DNA of 64,000 nucleotides from positions 62,001-126,000 of the IMG/VR virus record IMGVR_UViG_3300027749_002876. The stretch is one strand, 5' to 3'. This document shows positions 51,022 to 62,030 of the stretch, piece by piece. Position 1 is the first letter of the stretch, and the number at the start of each line of letters is the position of its first letter. The position numbers were made by a program, and so were the translations under genes. The notes under the pieces are model-generated. The model was not told the origin of the DNA. It did not search any database and was given only the letters and a program-made list of their open reading frames with translations.

Positions 51022-51046
51022 AAATAGACCCCGAAAGGTCTATTTT
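51022..51046. terminator. Bidirectional terminator
   Basis: AAAATAGACC-CCGAAA-GGTCTATTTT. Confidence 0.8.
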
Positions 51047-51647
51047 ACATTGTGGGGCCGTTCCCACTTTTGAATCCAACTGAACCGCCTTCTGCCTCGA
51101 TACGTTTGATAACGTCTTCAAACAGGATAGGTGTAAAATCTGTTTGTTCAACACATACACAATGATAACGAACATCGTTTTCATCACTGTATAATGTTAC
51201 ACCTGTCTTAGCGTCAATACCTCTAGCTTTTTTCACTCTATTAGAATGTAAGTGGCCATGAATGTTGACACCAAAACGTCCTAATGATGCCTCATGTAAC
51301 GGGATGTGACTTAAAATCATACCGTTCATTACATGATACGCACGTAATTCACGGAAGTATAATCTATACTCATCATCACGAAAGATATCGTGGTTACCAC
51401 GAATCAATACCTTGTCACCGTTTAAGCGACTCAACGTAATTAATGACTTGCGGTTAATAACTACGTCACCTAAGTGATATACTTTGTCATTTGGACGAAC
51501 TCGGTCGTTCCAACGCTTAATCATTTCCTCATCCATCTCATGTGGATCAGTCCATGGACGAATCTTTGTAACACCGTCTGCTTCGGTGAATCTGCACACG
51601 CCGGCATGACCAAAGTGGGTGTCACTCGTTAAAAATACTGCTGGCAT
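51045..51647 (-). CDS. Calcineurin-like phosphoesterase
   Basis: SDTHFGH, HLGD, GNHD, SH.P, HGHLH. Confidence 0.9.
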   Translation of the reverse strand: MPAVFLTSDTHFGHAGVCRFTEADGVTKIRPWTDPHEMDEEMIKRWNDRVRPNDKVYHLGDVVINRKSLITLSRLNGDKVLIRGNHDIFRDDEYRLYFRELRAYHVMNGMILSHIPLHEASLGRFGVNIHGHLHSNRVKKARGIDAKTGVTLYSDENDVRYHCVCVEQTDFTPILFEDVIKRIEAEGGSVGFKSGNGPTM

Positions 51648-51862
51648 TATACCCTCTCTTTCTTTACTCGTCCGATGCGTGACGTTTTGTTCCAATCATA
51701 AGCGATGCCATCCGGACACTTACCATCACGCACACTGTCTACACCAAACATACCGCATACTTCGAATCCGTCTCCTATGATAGAAATGAATTCGTTTAAT
51801 GACTTAGCATAATCCATTGCTGAATTTAAGTCTACAAATTCTAATTCTTTTACTTTAAACAT
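51647..51862 (-). CDS. Hypothetical protein
   Basis: AAGGA SD. Confidence 0.65.
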   Translation of the reverse strand: MFKVKELEFVDLNSAMDYAKSLNEFISIIGDGFEVCGMFGVDSVRDGKCPDGIAYDWNKTSRIGRVKKERV

Positions 51863-55581: not shown

Positions 55582-56268
55582 TCACAATTCTGCATAATTA
55601 GTAATACTTGGTGGTTTAGCAAACGCATCCACATACATAATCTTACTGTTATCTTTTATTGTTAATTTATTAATGTAATTATACACTACTTCAAAAGTTT
55701 GTTTGTATATTTCGGGATTATCGTATGTAAAATGCGGAGCTATAGCTGTTGCTATTGCACCTTTGTCATTGTGTTCGGCAAATGCCCTCATCATGTGAGC
55801 TTGCATTGCTTTGCTTCCTGCATACCCCGCATAACTTGTCCATTCATTACGATTGAACTTTACTGCCATATATGATATAATAAAAATAATTTTACTATTT
55901 TCATTCATTCGTTTTAATGCTTCTACACCCAAAACATGAGGTATATGGCATGCAAGTCTTATATTCTCTTCCCATCTTTTTAAGTCAACTACACTAGTAG
56001 AAGTAAAGCAATTTTCATCATTTGGATAAGAACCTGAATTGGAATTAAAAAGAATCATATCAACAGTATCAACATCTTTGGTCACTTCATTAAATGCTTC
56101 TACTACACATTGAACACTATCAAAGTTTGCTTTGATATCATGTGGATGTCCTGTATTGTAATTCTTGTGAGATACAATATAAACGTTATGACCATCAGTA
56201 CGCATACGCAATACTAGGTCATTACCAAACTTACCGGGTTCACCTCCCCCTATTATCACTATGTTCAT
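55582..56268 (-). CDS. Short-chain dehydrogenase/reductase-like protein
   Basis: IGG...G.FG, YAGSK (YxxxK). Confidence 0.75.
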   Translation of the reverse strand: MNIVIIGGGEPGKFGNDLVLRMRTDGHNVYIVSHKNYNTGHPHDIKANFDSVQCVVEAFNEVTKDVDTVDMILFNSNSGSYPNDENCFTSTSVVDLKRWEENIRLACHIPHVLGVEALKRMNENSKIIFIISYMAVKFNRNEWTSYAGYAGSKAMQAHMMRAFAEHNDKGAIATAIAPHFTYDNPEIYKQTFEVVYNYINKLTIKDNSKIMYVDAFAKPPSITNYAEL

Positions 56269-56288
56269 ATTATGAGTCCTCAAGTATT

Positions 56289-56364
56289 TGGTGGAGGATA
56301 CCAGGATCGAACTGGTCACCTACTGCTTGCAAAGCAGCCGCTCTCCCAAATGAGCTAATCCCCC
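56289..56364 (-). tRNA. tRNA-Ala(TGC)
   Basis: Cloverleaf with G3:U70. Confidence 0.95.
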
Positions 56365-56438: not shown

Positions 56439-56515
56439 TGGTGCCCCAGAGGAGACTCGAACTCCTAAAATTTGGCTTCTAAGACCAACACGTATACCAA
56501 TTCCGTCACCAGGGC
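56439..56515 (-). tRNA. tRNA-Leu(TAG) with short variable region
   Basis: Leu-type D-arm, 77 nt. Confidence 0.88.
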
Positions 56516-56516
56516 A

Positions 56517-56605
56517 GTTATAATATAACACACTACGAATCTCCTTCTAAGTTATGGACCTAGCGAGTACTCCAGTTGTGTTCATGTAATGTGTTATATT
56601 ATAAC
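56517..56605 (-). ncRNA. Candidate small RNA / 16-bp inverted repeat overlapping a promoter -10
   Basis: GTTATAATATAACACA/TGTGTTATATTATAAC; TTGACA-17-TATAAT at 56598-56626. Confidence 0.5.
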
Positions 56606-56690
56606 ATATATCTATTTATATGTCAACTATCTTTGGATAAGAAGAACTCAGACGTATGATAACCATTTACCGGTTAGTTATTACAGAGGT

Positions 56691-57227
56691 CTAAGCCGTG
56701 TTATATATTGCTAGATCACCATAGCGTTTTAAACTACACTCTATCAATTGTTTATGTTTTTCTACATCCAAGAAACCTTTAATATAAAGTGTTTCTCTCA
56801 TAAAATCTTCCTTTACTCTATGCAAACATGCGGTAAGATTAAGCAGGTATGCTATGGGCACTTGAGGCAATATAGGAGTTATCCATTCTTTGCCATTAAA
56901 TATTTCAAGCGAGTCGCATTTACCTTTTAATACTACATGATACCCAGCCGGTTCAGCTTGTGCAATGTGTTTATATTCATTAGATAAATTATCACCGGGA
57001 TAATAATCATGGTGAGGATTAACTACTATTTGTTGAAACTTATGCGTAAATGTTGTGATATCTATTATTGGTATTTGATCTAATAAACTTCTATATTGTT
57101 GATAGTTATTTTCTTTACCAAGAACTTCTTTTGTTTCCCAAAAATTTTGATGATAGGTATGTTGATCACCTAACTCAAAACTAGTTTCAGTAACGTCTAT
57201 ATCTAGTGGAACAAATAATAATTTCAT
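56691..57227 (-). CDS. Oxygenase/cupin-like hypothetical protein
   Basis: PHHD, EP.GY, H.V...R; TTAAATA-4-ATG. Confidence 0.6.
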   Translation of the reverse strand: MKLLFVPLDIDVTETSFELGDQHTYHQNFWETKEVLGKENNYQQYRSLLDQIPIIDITTFTHKFQQIVVNPHHDYYPGDNLSNEYKHIAQAEPAGYHVVLKGKCDSLEIFNGKEWITPILPQVPIAYLLNLTACLHRVKEDFMRETLYIKGFLDVEKHKQLIECSLKRYGDLAIYNTA

Positions 57228-57244
57228 CTAGTATTTAATAACAT

Positions 57245-57318
57245 TGGAGCGGGGTAACAGAATCGAACTGTCAGCATTAGCTTGGAAGGCTAAGGTATTA
57301 CCACTATACGAACCCCGC
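57245..57318 (-). tRNA. tRNA-Gly(TCC)
   Basis: Cloverleaf. Confidence 0.95.
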
Positions 57319-57330
57319 ATAAATATATTT

Positions 57331-57495
57331 ATGTACATATATGACGCTATCACAAAAACAGGACTTGTTATACACTTATCAATGAGTGCTGAACATACAT
57401 TTTACATTATGGTATTTGATATTGACAACTTCACATTGACCATGAAATTCTTCAACAACATCGAAACAGCACTTGCTTTTATACAAGCACTTTAG
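57331..57495 (+). CDS. Small protein antisense to the tRNA array
   Basis: CATAAATA just upstream of ATG. Confidence 0.5.
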   Translation: MYIYDAITKTGLVIHLSMSAEHTFYIMVFDIDNFTLTMKFFNNIETALAFIQAL

Positions 57496-57500
57496 TTAAC

Positions 57501-57578
57501 TGGAGCAACGGGTCAGATTTGAACTGACGGTTTTACGGATTTGCAATCCGTTGCATTGGGCCGCTCTGCCACCGTTGC
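57501..57578 (-). tRNA. tRNA-Cys(GCA)
   Basis: Cloverleaf, U73. Confidence 0.92.
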
Positions 57579-57582
57579 ATAT

Positions 57583-57792
57583 TGCTCCTGCATCCCCCGG
57601 CGGTAATTATACTGCATCAATCATCGGACTAGACGAATAATCCACGACAACATCACACACAGCTTCCACCCGCTTCCCGACAGGGACCGCTCTCGTGTTG
57701 CTAACGGCCTTTCGGTTCGAAGACTACCACCCGTAGTTGTCACACTACTTCTCATCCTGTGGGTCACAGTATCCGGAGACACCCGGAACGTT
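57583..57792 (-). ncRNA. Candidate ~210-nt structured RNA
   Basis: GC-rich; several hairpins; long-range GGUGGUAGU/AUUACCGCC pairing. Confidence 0.65.
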
Positions 57793-57793
57793 C

Positions 57794-57881
57794 TGGCGGA
57801 GTATGTAGGAATCGAACCTACCCACCGGTTGCCCAGTGACAGATTAGCAATCTGTTGCCTTAACCGCTCGGCCAATACTCC
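57794..57881 (-). tRNA. tRNA-Ser(GCT)
   Basis: Long variable arm. Confidence 0.95.
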
Positions 57882-57888
57882 TGATACT

Positions 57889-57965
57889 TGGTGCCTCGAA
57901 CTGGACTCGAACCAGTAACCTAACGATTATGAGTCGTGTGCTCTAACCAATTGAGCTATCAAGGC
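57889..57965 (-). tRNA. tRNA-Ile2(CAT), lysidine-type
   Basis: CGACUCAUAAUCG anticodon arm as in ileX. Confidence 0.8.
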
Positions 57966-57971
57966 ATTGTT

Positions 57972-58056
57972 TGGTACGACTGGCCGGAATCGAACCGGCA
58001 CGCTGTTGGGCGAGAGATTTTAAGTCTCTTGTGTCTACCTATTTCACCACAGTCGC
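57972..58056 (-). tRNA. tRNA-Leu(TAA)
   Basis: Long variable arm. Confidence 0.95.
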
Positions 58057-58102
58057 AAATCTTGTTACTATTATATATCATAATAGATTTGTTGTCAATG
58101 AA

Positions 58103-58319
58103 TTTGTAAGTAGTATCACCATCGTTATTGATACCATTCACCCGTGTAATAAAGTCGACCGGGACTCGGTACGCTACTTGGGATTCATCCAGCTGATACG
58201 CCATCATGTATGCCGATCCCACTCAAGCGATCAGCCGGGCATCGAACCCGCAACCTTCTACTAACTCAGTCCTTCGAAGAAACCTCATTAGCGTGACTTC
58301 ACTTGCTAACACTTACAAA
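58103..58319 (-). ncRNA. Candidate ~215-nt structured RNA
   Basis: 9-bp closing stem TTTGTAAGT/ACTTACAAA; internal T-arm-like CGGG-UUCGAUG-CCCG. Confidence 0.6.
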
Positions 58320-58320
58320 A

Positions 58321-58860
58321 CTATTTTTTCCACCACCAAACCAATCGTTCAACTGTTGGAAAATTTTTATTGATATCTAAAACAATTGGTTTACAAACTG
58401 ATAAGTTCAACTTATTAGTCCATTCATAAAATGTTTTATAACTTAATCTATGTTTAGTACCAAAATTAGATATATGATCTTCATTATGACCTATATAATC
58501 TAAAAATGGTTGCATTCTTACTACAATATATCCACCGGGCTTGATCCAACTTACAATTTTTTCTACATCATAGAATTGATTTTCTACGGGTTTATATTGT
58601 ATGGAACCTAAACAAAGTGCGATATCTATTGATTCTTTTTCAAAGACGACATCATTTACTGAAGCCTGCATATCACTATTTGGATATGGATCAGCGTCAA
58701 AGCCAATCAAATTATGTATTTTGTCCTTGAAAAGATTTTCCCCACATCCCACATCAATTACTTTTTGCGGAAATAAGGAATTTACCTCTTCAATTAAATT
58801 GTAACCTGAATATGTGAATCCACGCATTCTAGTATCATTGTAAATATAAGCTTCATTCAT
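58321..58860 (-). CDS. Class I SAM methyltransferase (paralogue of the C-terminal part of 50287-51015)
   Basis: SG..L.EEVN...P.KVIDVGCG.N.FK..I.NLIG.D, CLGSI. Confidence 0.8.
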   Translation of the reverse strand: MNEAYIYNDTRMRGFTYSGYNLIEEVNSLFPQKVIDVGCGENLFKDKIHNLIGFDADPYPNSDMQASVNDVVFEKESIDIALCLGSIQYKPVENQFYDVEKIVSWIKPGGYIVVRMQPFLDYIGHNEDHISNFGTKHRLSYKTFYEWTNKLNLSVCKPIVLDINKNFPTVERLVWWWKK

Positions 58861-58875
58861 GAAGATATTTATCGA

Positions 58876-58950
58876 TGGCGACTCGTGGGAGAATCGAACT
58901 CCCGTAATCGGATAGACAATCCGAAGTAATGACCATTATACGAACGAGCC
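58876..58950 (-). tRNA. tRNA-Asp(GTC)
   Basis: Cloverleaf. Confidence 0.93.
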
Positions 58951-59034
58951 TAAATTAGTAGTAGTTTCTATATCACCCATTGAAACTAATAAACATTGAG
59001 AAAGAGCTTGCGTAGCAAGATTTCTATTTGTTCT

Positions 59035-60359: not shown

Positions 60360-60920
60360 CTATGATAGCAATATTCTGCTGTGTTTGGGAACACCTGCAA
60401 GCAAGTATTCCATTTGGTCAGCAAGAATTGTTCTATGTTGTAGAATCATATTTTCGTAGTGGTTTGGGATATACGGAGTGTATAATAATTCCATACGGGA
60501 ATCTTTCAATGTCTTATGACCTTTTTTGCTGTTACAATCTTTACATGCCGTAACAACGTTCATCCAGGTGTTTTCGCCACCTTTACTTTTTGGATGAATA
60601 TGGTCTCTACTTAACGCATGGTAGTTAGCAAAGTATTCTCCGCAATATGCACAAACGTGTCTGTCACGACCAAACAATGTTTTATTAGTTAGTGCCACAC
60701 ATGAATGTTTATATGGATTGAATCCATGACCTTTGATAGCAATAATGCTATTAGCTTCCAAGTAACTTAATGTACCGTCATTTTGCATACCACCACGATA
60801 TTTAGCCACAATATTGCCCATACTCCATGCAATGGCATCTTTTGCTTTATAGGTAATTGCGTCATCATTTGATATCCATTGCCGGGGAACTCCCGAGATA
60901 TCTAGTGCTAGAACAGCCAT
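60360..60920 (-). CDS. HNH endonuclease
   Basis: LFGRDRHVCAYCG...SRDHIHP.SKGG...W.NVVTAC..CN..KG. Confidence 0.92.
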   Translation of the reverse strand: MAVLALDISGVPRQWISNDDAITYKAKDAIAWSMGNIVAKYRGGMQNDGTLSYLEANSIIAIKGHGFNPYKHSCVALTNKTLFGRDRHVCAYCGEYFANYHALSRDHIHPKSKGGENTWMNVVTACKDCNSKKGHKTLKDSRMELLYTPYIPNHYENMILQHRTILADQMEYLLAGVPKHSRILLS

Positions 60921-60968
60921 GTAGTACTCCTTTTCTGTTATTATCACTATATGTATTTAATATTATAT

Positions 60969-61043: not shown

Positions 61044-62030
61044 TTATTGAGATTGTACTCCCTTTACGATTTCTTGTAAAGATTGATCTAACCAATCTGT
61101 GTTAGTTAGTTTTGGGAGTAATTCCATTACTACATATGCTTGTATTAATGGATCTGAACACAAATAATCTGTTAGTTGTTTGGTTCTATTAAATTCCGTT
61201 ATCTCATTTAAAAAATTTAAATGAGGTTGTGCTTTTATATATGTTGGGTGATAATTTTTTGCATAAGAAAAATCAAATATTCCTGCATCTGATTCACTAC
61301 ATATAGATTCTAATAAATCTATAAAGTTTGATTCATATATTTTCAATAAATTAATTGAATAATAATTTTTTGGTATGTGATATGGTTCTACATACATATC
61401 ACTATTGACCTCATGAGGATTATTTGCATGTCTAATGTCATACCAATGTTTATATAAATCTAGATGATGTCTATAATCGTATTGTTTCATACTAGGACTA
61501 ATATAATCCAAAGGATAAGATGATGAAAATATATCATCATATGATACAACAAATTTATTACGATTTTCTATTGTGTTTTCGCAAGGAAAAGTTAAATTAT
61601 ATTTTGTAGTTGTTCCAACAAAATCAAAGTATAATGGCCATTTGGTAATACAATTTAAATTTCCTACTGCTTGTGAATTTAAATCAGTTGCTGTTATTTG
61701 AATAATTATTGGATCTCGGTCAAACGTAAGTATCCATGCAACCGTCTCTTGGAATTTTAAATCATTTCTAGCATTTAATAAAAATATTTTGTTTTCTGTT
61801 GGTTTGTTTAATATTAACCACATTATCAATTCTTTGATTCCACAATGTGTTGGAATTCTATGGTGCAAATGACTGGTACCGATACCACCGTATTTAAGAC
61901 TAGCTGATGTATTAAGAGGGTCATCTATTGTTAGATGTGATAAATCTATTTCACTCTTACTAATACACCAATTTATATAACTTCCAGAGTAACCCGGTGG
62001 ATATAAAATATAAATGTTTTTACGGAGCAT
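61044..62030 (-). CDS. Hypothetical protein (P-loop/sulfotransferase-like N-terminus)
   Basis: IYILYPPGYSGSYI; very AT-rich. Confidence 0.6.
   Translation of the reverse strand: MLRKNIYILYPPGYSGSYINWCISKSEIDLSHLTIDDPLNTSASLKYGGIGTSHLHHRIPTHCGIKELIMWLILNKPTENKIFLLNARNDLKFQETVAWILTFDRDPIIIQITATDLNSQAVGNLNCITKWPLYFDFVGTTTKYNLTFPCENTIENRNKFVVSYDDIFSSSYPLDYISPSMKQYDYRHHLDLYKHWYDIRHANNPHEVNSDMYVEPYHIPKNYYSINLLKIYESNFIDLLESICSESDAGIFDFSYAKNYHPTYIKAQPHLNFLNEITEFNRTKQLTDYLCSDPLIQAYVVMELLPKLTNTDWLDQSLQEIVKGVQSQ

Follow-up and report, generated by a model that had tools for sequence, protein, structure and literature searches.

What occupies the 215-nt spacer between the tRNA-Ser and tRNA-Cys genes (57579-57793) in the tRNA array of an uncultivated virus? 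The window analysed here comprises 64,000 nucleotides (positions 62,001 to 126,000) of the 524,565-bp IMG/VR virus record IMGVR_UViG_3300027749_002876, which carries a T4-type Gp23 capsid gene; 27 tRNA genes, all on the minus strand, were identified by ARAGORN and Rfam in the final 11 kb of the window. An earlier note on this DNA had proposed that a GC-rich structured RNA at 57583-57792 fills the spacer. We have identified a conserved element with nearly identical borders (57793-57583, minus strand; conserved part of 211 nt), here designated RNA-1, and its G+C content of 54% versus 36.7% for the genome agrees with that description. Read on the minus strand, the spacer RNA starts with GAACGUUCCGG directly after tRNA-Ser and ends with ...GGGGGAUGCAGGAGCA, followed by AUAU and then by tRNA-Cys. 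We are highly confident that RNA-1 is a genuine structured noncoding RNA (ncRNA) gene, and with a probability of roughly 0.75 we interpret it as an abundant trans-acting structured RNA that is released from a tRNA precursor. The features that define the locus are:

57794..57881, minus strand: upstream tRNA-Ser(gct) (ARAGORN and Rfam); its 3' end abuts the 5' end of RNA-1
57583..57793, minus strand: RNA-1, the whole conserved ncRNA (covariance model R1, 212 bits, E = 1e-68; alignment A2); its 5' end is the G at 57793, directly behind tRNA-Ser, and its conserved 3' tail stops at 57583
57501..57578, minus strand: downstream tRNA-Cys(gca) (ARAGORN); its 5' end is an RNase P site and would set the 3' end of RNA-1
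58070..58098, minus strand: sigma-70 promoter TTGACA-17-TATAAT, with 12 of 12 hexamer matches

RNA-1 is carried by at least 161 viral loci on uncultivated viral contigs. Members were collected via exact 20-mer and 19-mer anchors, and the observed diversity is thus a lower bound; the 20-mer core occurs in more than 118 IMG/VR contigs and the 19-mer core TAATTACCGCCGGGGGATG in 88. There are 103 distinct RNA-1 sequences, and the covariance model R1 was built from 90. In searches with R1 each locus yielded a single full-length copy (170-248 bits), and the virus's own record yielded two, the second of which (81% identity) lies in a mirror-image tRNA array. The element is not coding, as indicated by length differences of its variable region that are not multiples of three, and stop codons occur in all six frames; a mechanically called open reading frame (ORF) of 84 aa at 57621-57875 extends into tRNA-Ser.

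Uncultivated freshwater jumbo phages with a T4-type capsid carry this family in their tRNA islands. By capsid, the closest cultured relatives of the record are jumbo phages (Sinorhizobium phage Phosso, 71%; Vibrio phage 2.275.O, 70%), with PA5oct (66.5%) and GAP32 (65%) as further relatives, and the sequencing runs containing its DNA are freshwater and lake metagenomes. Searching the 215-nt spacer against 50,697 GenBank phage records by blastn (word size 11) gave no match, and a megablast search of 4 kb against GenBank phages matched one tRNA-Leu only. Model R1, with the virus's own genome as positive control, found nothing in the five cultured jumbo phages closest by capsid (Phosso, Vibrio 2.275.O, PA5oct, GAP32, and XacN1). 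A 20-mer scan of 185,579 species genomes, one per prokaryote species, yielded one true member, located on a viral-looking 23-kb contig of a 'Haliscomenobacter' metagenome-assembled genome that bears tRNAs and a permuted transfer-messenger RNA (tmRNA). Fremin et al. (2023; PMC10690425) compiled a catalogue of 8,495 candidate RNAs from IMG/VR, and the RNA-1 family may be one of these unnamed candidates; its core sequences were not found printed in the literature searched.

The fold of RNA-1 comprises seven helices, a loop-loop pseudoknot and further tertiary pairs, and it is backed by 90 distinct members. RNAalifold, a mutual-information scan and pair counting on alignment A2 agreed on the following layout, given from 5' to 3':

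5' tail, minus strand: AACGUU
57772..57787, minus strand: hairpin H1, UCCGG-GUGUCU-CCGGA; two-sided changes at all 5 pairs; loop in kissing contact with that of H3
57757..57769, minus strand: hairpin H2, CUGUG-ACC-CACAG; conserved ACC(C) loop; 3 of 5 pairs covary, 100% of cells paired
57749..57756, minus strand: conserved junction GAUGAGAA between H2 and H3, GAUGAGAAGU in the family layout; part of it may pair with CGU of the 5' tail (P1')
57733..57748, minus strand: hairpin H3, GUAGU-GUGACA-ACUAC; 3 of 4 pairs covary; loop GACA complementary to the H1 loop UGUC
57726..57732, minus strand: first GGGUGGU motif, long-range partner of the H4 loop ACC and/or of ACCGCC
57707..57724, minus strand: hairpin H4, GUCUU-CGAACCGA-AAGGC; conserved AACC loop; 4 of 5 pairs covary
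57694..57706, minus strand: hairpin H5, CGU-UAGCAAC-ACG; CGY/RCG in the family, with a conserved heptaloop URGCAAY
57670..57687, minus strand: 5' strand of helix Pb, GUCCCU..CG..GCGG (RNAalifold consensus); includes an alternative local hairpin CCC-UGUC-GGG
57611..57663, minus strand: variable hairpin H7, base GCUGUG/UGCAGU; 5 of 6 base pairs covary; length 26-82 nt
57592..57610, minus strand: near-invariant AUAAUUA, then the 3' strand of Pb (CCGCCGGGGGAU); pairing from RNAalifold and pair counting; contains the 19-mer core
57583..57591, minus strand: conserved 3' tail GCAG(G)AGCA (alignment A2); a 4-nt spacer (57579-57582) precedes tRNA-Cys

Across the 51 proposed pairs, 97.9% of alignment cells hold standard pairs versus 85.9% in shuffles, and changes on both sides were found in 508 cells versus 128, a count reached by 0 of 500 shuffles. 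Just over half of the pairs (26 of 51) show such two-sided changes. When partners were slid by 1-3 columns, pairing fell to 33-47% and double changes to 18-64 cells; compensatory changes thus go beyond the controls, as is expected of structured ncRNAs in general, with slid controls ~10-fold lower. The lack of structural conservation that the earlier note had named as grounds for dismissal was not observed; because the structure is conserved and covarying, this objection fails. The mutual-information scan recovered the helices together with tertiary pairs between columns 22-68, 11-50, 74-151, and 172-179. Across ~100 variants in alignment A2 the stems vary freely, whereas junctions and loops are near-invariant, and this pattern, together with the tertiary pairs, agrees with an RNA that functions through its exact three-dimensional shape.

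Three hairpins drawn in the earlier note correspond to H1 (UCCGG/CCGGA), H2 (CUGUG/CACAG) and H3 (GUAGU/ACUAC), and the covariation listed above bears all of them out. For the CC-GAAA-GG hairpin, covariation backs a different register, in which GUCUU/AAGGC closes an 8-nt loop, NNAACCNA (H4). The GGAUUA/UAGUCC hairpin does occur, though within the variable tip of H7, where the sequence is unrelated in most members. The long-range pairing GGUGGUAGU/AUUACCGCC could form ~7 bp, but its bases hardly vary, two of them belong to the covarying H4, and it competes with the long-range pairing GUCCCU/RGGGAY, for which there is one compensatory event; it is indistinguishable from Pb or from the local CCC-UGUC-GGG hairpin. 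The RNA is indeed pseudoknotted, as had been suggested, but the pseudoknot is formed by the kissing loops of H1 and H3 and not by the pairing then drawn.

The H1 and H3 loops are complementary and change together (UGUC/GACA, AUCA/UGAU, UAACG/CGUUA), with column pair 22-68 read as G-C in 78 members and A-U in 18. Their mean complementarity is 4.0 versus 3.49 in shuffles, a value reached by 0 of 2000. In two loci (L064:5712-5908 and L136:5136-5354) both loops have turned into GUAGCA, the motif also found in the H5 loop UAGCAA. They no longer match each other as usual (2 bp at best), a hint that UAGCAA loops serve as a recognition module in their own right.

Changes in the other elements are also coordinated among distant positions. 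The H2 loop A->G substitution co-occurs with changes in columns 78 and 152: U78->C is found in 5 members, always with the H4-loop change A152->G (AACC -> AGCC), and the H2 loop gains a G. The P1' pairing of the 5' tail with the GAUG junction is a weak proposal, suggested by columns 11-50, in which G.U changes to C-G or A-U in variants. In 16 members, H4 accommodates optional inserts of ~30-55 nt. In H5, columns 165-173 form C-G in 68 members and U-A in 22, and a base six positions downstream (column 179) changes along with the final loop base, column 172 (U-A in 83, C-G in 7); the window copy bears the minority C172/G179 pair. The long-range helix Pb joins GUCCCU..CG..GCGG with CCGC CG RGGGAY and encloses H7; U183/A324 changes to A/U in L032, L041, and L114, G182 varies against Y325, and the inner part never varies. 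Most members have in H7 an internal loop (UGU-GAUG / UUGA) that appears kink-turn-like on inspection of the sequence. The 3' tail of the window copy (57583-57591) is GCAGGAGCA, with one extra G compared with GCAGAGCA of the family.

RNA-1 is closely associated with tRNA genes. A tRNA lies within 300 nt in 123 of 130 instances, and these tRNAs, 185 in total, share the strand of RNA-1 without exception. In 74 instances a tRNA ends no more than 15 nt upstream (Tyr 30, Ser 20, Asn 6, Asp 6, Glu 5, Arg 3, Cys 3, Pro 1), and at 34 non-redundant junctions 0-3 nt separate the tRNA end from the conserved ACGUU motif. The commonest downstream neighbours are tRNA-Cys (24) and tRNA-Ala (12). Elsewhere RNA-1 is preceded by a second conserved RNA, RNA-2 (L070 and L106), by other, unassigned conserved stretches, by ORFs or by its own promoter; the last is the case in L028, L060, and L093, where a TTGACA-17/18-TATAAT-like promoter just upstream indicates that RNA-1 is a gene in its own right. 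The unit behind the promoter at 58098-58070 contains tRNA-Leu, tRNA-Met, tRNA-Ser, RNA-1, and tRNA-Cys, and no terminator-like site was found for it in the window.

The position of the 5' end, 0-3 nt past the CCA of the upstream tRNA at the 34 junctions, would also suit a ribozyme that cleaves itself at its own 5' edge and so frees the 3' end of that tRNA, or else one that processes tRNA precursors in trans as a minimal RNase P-like catalyst, its GGU motifs docking their ACC(A) ends. The invariant core, the nested pseudoknots and two GGGUGG motifs give RNA-1 the look of a small ribozyme, and to the eye it shares with the catalytic domain of bacterial RNase P RNA the link to tRNA, a multi-hairpin core closed by a long-range helix, conserved junctions rich in A, and GGU motifs able to pair with ACC. 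However, no ribozyme or RNase P model matched at E<=10, including those for HDV-like, hatchet, twister, pistol, glmS, and hammerhead ribozymes, and in RNA-1 its own loops carry the ACC partners. Compared by eye with E. coli M1 RNA, the topology does not fit the P1-P4 core: the helices come in an order that cannot be matched to P1-P2-P3-P4, and the conserved regions CR-I and CR-V appear to be absent. Self-cleavage would moreover put a 2',3'-cyclic phosphate on the tRNA CCA end and thereby block charging, and in L028, L060, and L093, which have their own promoter and no upstream tRNA, there is nothing to cleave off. We consider a ribozyme of either kind improbable.

The constant co-orientation with tRNAs, usually with direct abutment, is also what would be expected of a cis-acting structured spacer that insulates folding, holds off nucleases or gives RNase E or RNase P a point of entry, and ensures correct maturation or stoichiometry of the neighbouring tRNAs. 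The preference for class II tRNAs upstream (Tyr 30 and Ser 20 of 74) and for tRNA-Cys downstream is compatible with such a role, whereas the neighbours are diverse (eight tRNA identities upstream, nine downstream), and in some loci RNA-1 comes after RNA-2, ORFs or a promoter of its own. A spacer would need far less than ~100 invariant nucleotides and several tertiary contacts, and the abundance of RNA-1 above that of its flanking tRNAs (see below) indicates a stable end product. A purely cis-acting function appears even less probable than catalysis.

Expression was analysed for the region 56500-59000. Logan contigs of four metatranscriptome runs from four studies (three of freshwater, one of lake water), at least 85% alike, cover 57592-57843. 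Over this stretch of RNA-1 the summed word depth reaches ~9,000 in X19 and ~10,000 in X20; the tRNAs are also covered, at an abundance that RNA-1 exceeds. The stretch 58096-58347 has a depth of up to ~20,900, while the ORF stretches 56752-57171 and 58348-58851 have a depth of 0. The deep coverage of RNA-1 next to ORFs of zero depth argues for abundant RNA and not for contaminating DNA.

Such expression also bears on the idea that RNA-1 is a relic or selfish DNA, namely a decayed intron, a pseudo-tRNA cluster or a mobile repeat hitch-hiking in tRNA arrays. HNH endonuclease ORFs and a group I intron do occur in these arrays, but RNA-1 is expressed at a high level, is present in one copy per array, has no terminal repeats, and is under strong purifying selection with compensatory changes; no intron or tRNA model matched it, and no target-site duplications, multi-copy genomes or clean empty sites were seen. 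We find this explanation hardly credible.

To place RNA-1 among known RNAs, it was searched against Rfam 15, a check that the earlier note had recommended for manA in particular, and no family, manA included, matched at gathering thresholds or at E<=10. A scan of 57480-57900 at E<=10 returned the two tRNAs, chance matches on tRNAs and one 12-bit match to a long noncoding RNA (E = 2.3), and six other RNA-1 members gave the same outcome, with tRNAs only. The manA and GOLLD RNAs are thus excluded as identities. manA is a phage-associated structured RNA class, and it is a motif of the 5' untranslated region (5'-UTR) type, whereas RNA-1 here is not upstream of a coding gene. No tmRNA was called in the window by ARAGORN or Rfam. 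YrlA (RF02553), which together with Ro60/Rsr represents the stable phage and bacterial RNAs with tRNA-like features, matched neither RNA-1 nor RNA-2, the genome lacks a TROVE/Ro60 or RtcB gene, and the sole weak YrlA match (L036, E = 0.28) lies over tRNAs.

The closest parallels, the species 1 and 2 RNAs of T4, GOLLD and ROOL, are of kind. In sequence and fold RNA-1 matches none of these, and in kind it is an orphan structured RNA of phage tRNA islands, as the earlier note had supposed: its structure covaries, and GOLLD occurs in the same islands. In bacteriophage T4, the adjacent stable RNAs rnaC (species 1) and rnaD (species 2), of 119-139 nt and with unknown function, lie within the tRNA cluster on the same strand, directly behind tRNA-Arg (NC_000866, 70908-71171). 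They mature together with tRNA precursors. RNA-1 likewise lies co-oriented in a phage tRNA cluster directly after a tRNA, its record shares the T4-type Gp23 capsid, and the pair of RNA-2 directly followed by RNA-1 in L070 and L106 parallels rnaC/rnaD. RNA-1 is, however, larger (211 nt) and differs in its pseudoknotted architecture, and homology was rejected: R1 scored below 4 bits on the T4 region with filters off, and nhmmer found nothing for RNA-1.

GOLLD (RF02032; gathering score 150 bits) had no match at E<=10 on the element and none genome-wide, whereas the same model finds a true GOLLD in the relative L039 (311-775, minus strand, 189 bits). A 5' fragment of GOLLD (E = 7e-10) is also present at L147:930-1050 (plus strand, cut by the locus end), in the same tRNA island as RNA-1. 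GOLLD and ROOL are phage RNAs described as 'often near tRNA islands', and they build cages through intermolecular contacts (bioRxiv 10.1101/2024.12.08.627333). Like RNA-1, they are ornate structured orphan RNAs of phages or prophages with no known protein partner or function, they share the tRNA islands (GOLLD in L039 and L147), and lake metagenomes are a common source. RNA-1 could by analogy be an RNA-only multimeric assembly, related to GOLLD and ROOL in kind and not by sequence, whose H1 and H3 loops would pair between molecules, yielding dimers or closed oligomers able to bind tRNAs or ribosomal parts or to enclose them. The niche and even the contigs shared with GOLLD, and the lack of any partner protein found in the genome, are compatible with this, and the covarying loop-loop complementarity could be intra- or intermolecular. 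On the other hand, 211 nt is far below the size of GOLLD and ROOL (RNA-1 is 3-4 times smaller, with no match in sequence or structure), and a kiss within one molecule is sterically easy, since H1 and H3 emerge from the same three-way junction. We therefore give such an assembly only a slim chance, comparable to that of a ribozyme.

Our preferred interpretation of RNA-1 is that of a stable trans-acting RNA released from a tRNA precursor. Transcription from the sigma-70 promoter at 58098-58070 would yield one precursor with tRNA-Leu, tRNA-Met, tRNA-Ser, RNA-1, and tRNA-Cys, from which host tRNA end-processing would free RNA-1. Its 5' end would arise as the upstream tRNA is cut by an endonuclease and trimmed by exonucleases to its encoded CCA, and the 3' end of RNA-1 would be set by RNase P cleavage at the 5' end of tRNA-Cys. 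We regard this release by tRNA processing as likely. RNA-1 would then accumulate as a stable RNA and act in trans via its three-dimensional shape, most probably by binding a component of the tRNA and translation machinery of host or phage, as a partner, decoy or cofactor. Several features point to a precise surface for binding: the junctions that do not vary, two ACC loops matched by two GGU motifs, the kink-turn-like loop, and the UAGCAA loop that RNA-2 also has. That RNA-1 is a trans-acting binder rather than a catalyst has, in our judgement, about an even chance.

Several observations weigh against this interpretation. The single sequence folds no better than shuffles (z = -1.23 on the minus strand and +0.73 on the plus strand; not significant), so the case for structure rests on the relatives, and among these the invariance of the two anchor motifs is partly imposed by sampling with exact words. 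Some tertiary covariations come from one clade, such as columns 38, 78, and 152 in 5 related members. Several pairings between G-runs and C-runs (the inner part of Pb, GGGUGGU/ACCGCC, and the local CCC-UGUC-GGG) are ambiguous because these bases almost never vary, and the rare variants are split: U183/A324 -> A/U favours Pb, whereas A194->G and changes in L136 fit the local hairpin. The Logan contigs bear neither strand nor RNA-end information, and the zero depth of the ORFs could partly stem from diverged relatives, to which the contigs often belong. Finally, a search of the genome for partner-protein genes (TROVE/Ro60, RtcB, L7Ae, and SmpB) found none.

Phage tRNA islands already house GOLLD, ROOL and the species 1 and 2 RNAs of T4, the latter unexplained for decades. 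To these is added a compact family of ~210 nt, strongly conserved and highly expressed, present in at least 161 lake-phage contigs, with a covariation-backed fold and a second RNA adjoining; being small, it is far more tractable than GOLLD. RNA-1 merits an Rfam entry, as jumbo-phage annotations now leave a blank spacer at its position. If RNA-1 acts on tRNAs or ribosomes, this would reveal what benefit phages draw from structured RNAs among their tRNA genes. A bolder proposal, which we hold to be unlikely, is that RNA-1 represents a new RNA class acting by its fold, as a ribozyme on tRNA ends or as a small self-assembling RNA-only particle, possibly with RNA-2; the two RNAs, with their shared UAGCAA loop, might then manipulate host tRNA or ribosome function during infection.

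RNA-2 is a conserved RNA of ~220 nt at 58320-58101 (minus strand), 300 nt upstream of RNA-1, flanked by the stop codon of the ORF at 58321-58860 on one side and by the promoter at 58098 on the other. A 9-bp stem (UUUGUAAGU/ACUUACAAA), covarying among relatives, closes RNA-2, which also contains a T-arm-like hairpin (GCGGGUUCGAUGCCCGG) and a UUAGCAAG loop similar to the H5 loop of RNA-1. The T-arm-like hairpin and the long closing stem are features it shares with YrlA. About 29 of the RNA-1 loci retrieved contain a homologue (71-90% identity), in many cases just behind the CCA end of a tRNA and in some immediately ahead of RNA-1. RNA-2 had no match in Rfam 15 at E<=10, and its metatranscriptome depth is the highest of the examined stretch.

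Besides the promoter upstream of RNA-1, a second sigma-70 promoter with a 12/12 consensus match (TTGACA-17-TATAAT) lies at 56598-56626 on the minus strand, and each of the two heads a tRNA sub-operon. Two perfect consensus promoters suggest that the phage uses host-type promoters for its tRNA and ncRNA genes. ORFs lie amid the tRNA array at 60360-60947, 58321-58860, 55582-56319, and 51045-51695, all on the minus strand; the array ORFs include matches to an HNH endonuclease (E = 2e-17), weak methyltransferase-like and short-chain dehydrogenase-like matches, and a metallophosphoesterase-like match, while three other ORFs of the array have no Pfam match. These neighbours give no clue to the function of RNA-1. 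A group I intron match (57.5 bits) was found in the tRNA array of L026 (6439-6638), 450 nt upstream of RNA-1. Recurrent, unassigned blocks directly before RNA-1 are shared by L009, L024, L066, L085, and L088 (~70 nt before), by L071 and L097, by L029 and L104, and by L032, L041, and L114. Some of these blocks end in ...CCCGCCA like a tRNA acceptor end and received no ARAGORN call; they may be non-canonical tRNAs or further ncRNAs.

The record is self-collinear in inverted orientation (10-160 kb versus 524-390 kb), with arms of ~150 kb and roughly 70-90% identity. Its two tRNA arrays are syntenic mirror images (31 tRNAs at 115-126.5 kb, minus strand, and 25 at 417-426.6 kb, plus strand), but the Gp23 and tmRNA genes occur once each. 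Two related phages were probably joined in a chimeric assembly, and the two RNA-1 copies are therefore likely orthologues and not paralogues. The tmRNA is of the permuted, two-piece type with the tag ANDSQFSIAA and lies outside the window (G000:C1:288480-288896, minus strand); permuted tmRNAs are also present in the relatives L167 and L077, and a permuted tmRNA, like GOLLD and a group I intron, shares the islands that hold RNA-1.

In the scan of prokaryote species genomes, the exact 20-mer CCCTGTCGGGAAGCGGGTGG was also encountered in ~33 Bradyrhizobium species (L164-L198; for example L176:4400-4600), where it sits in a conserved 5'-UTR-like element, after TTGCAACTCATTTGCAAC...CTAG and before an AGGAAAnnATG start. 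These matches were rejected as members of RNA-1, as they share the 20-mer alone within a different element. With ~1 chance match expected in 596 Gb, the shared 20-mer is read as a single chance event inherited within the genus, and the Bradyrhizobium element is probably unrelated to RNA-1. It matches no Rfam family at gathering thresholds and may itself be an undescribed cis-regulatory RNA.

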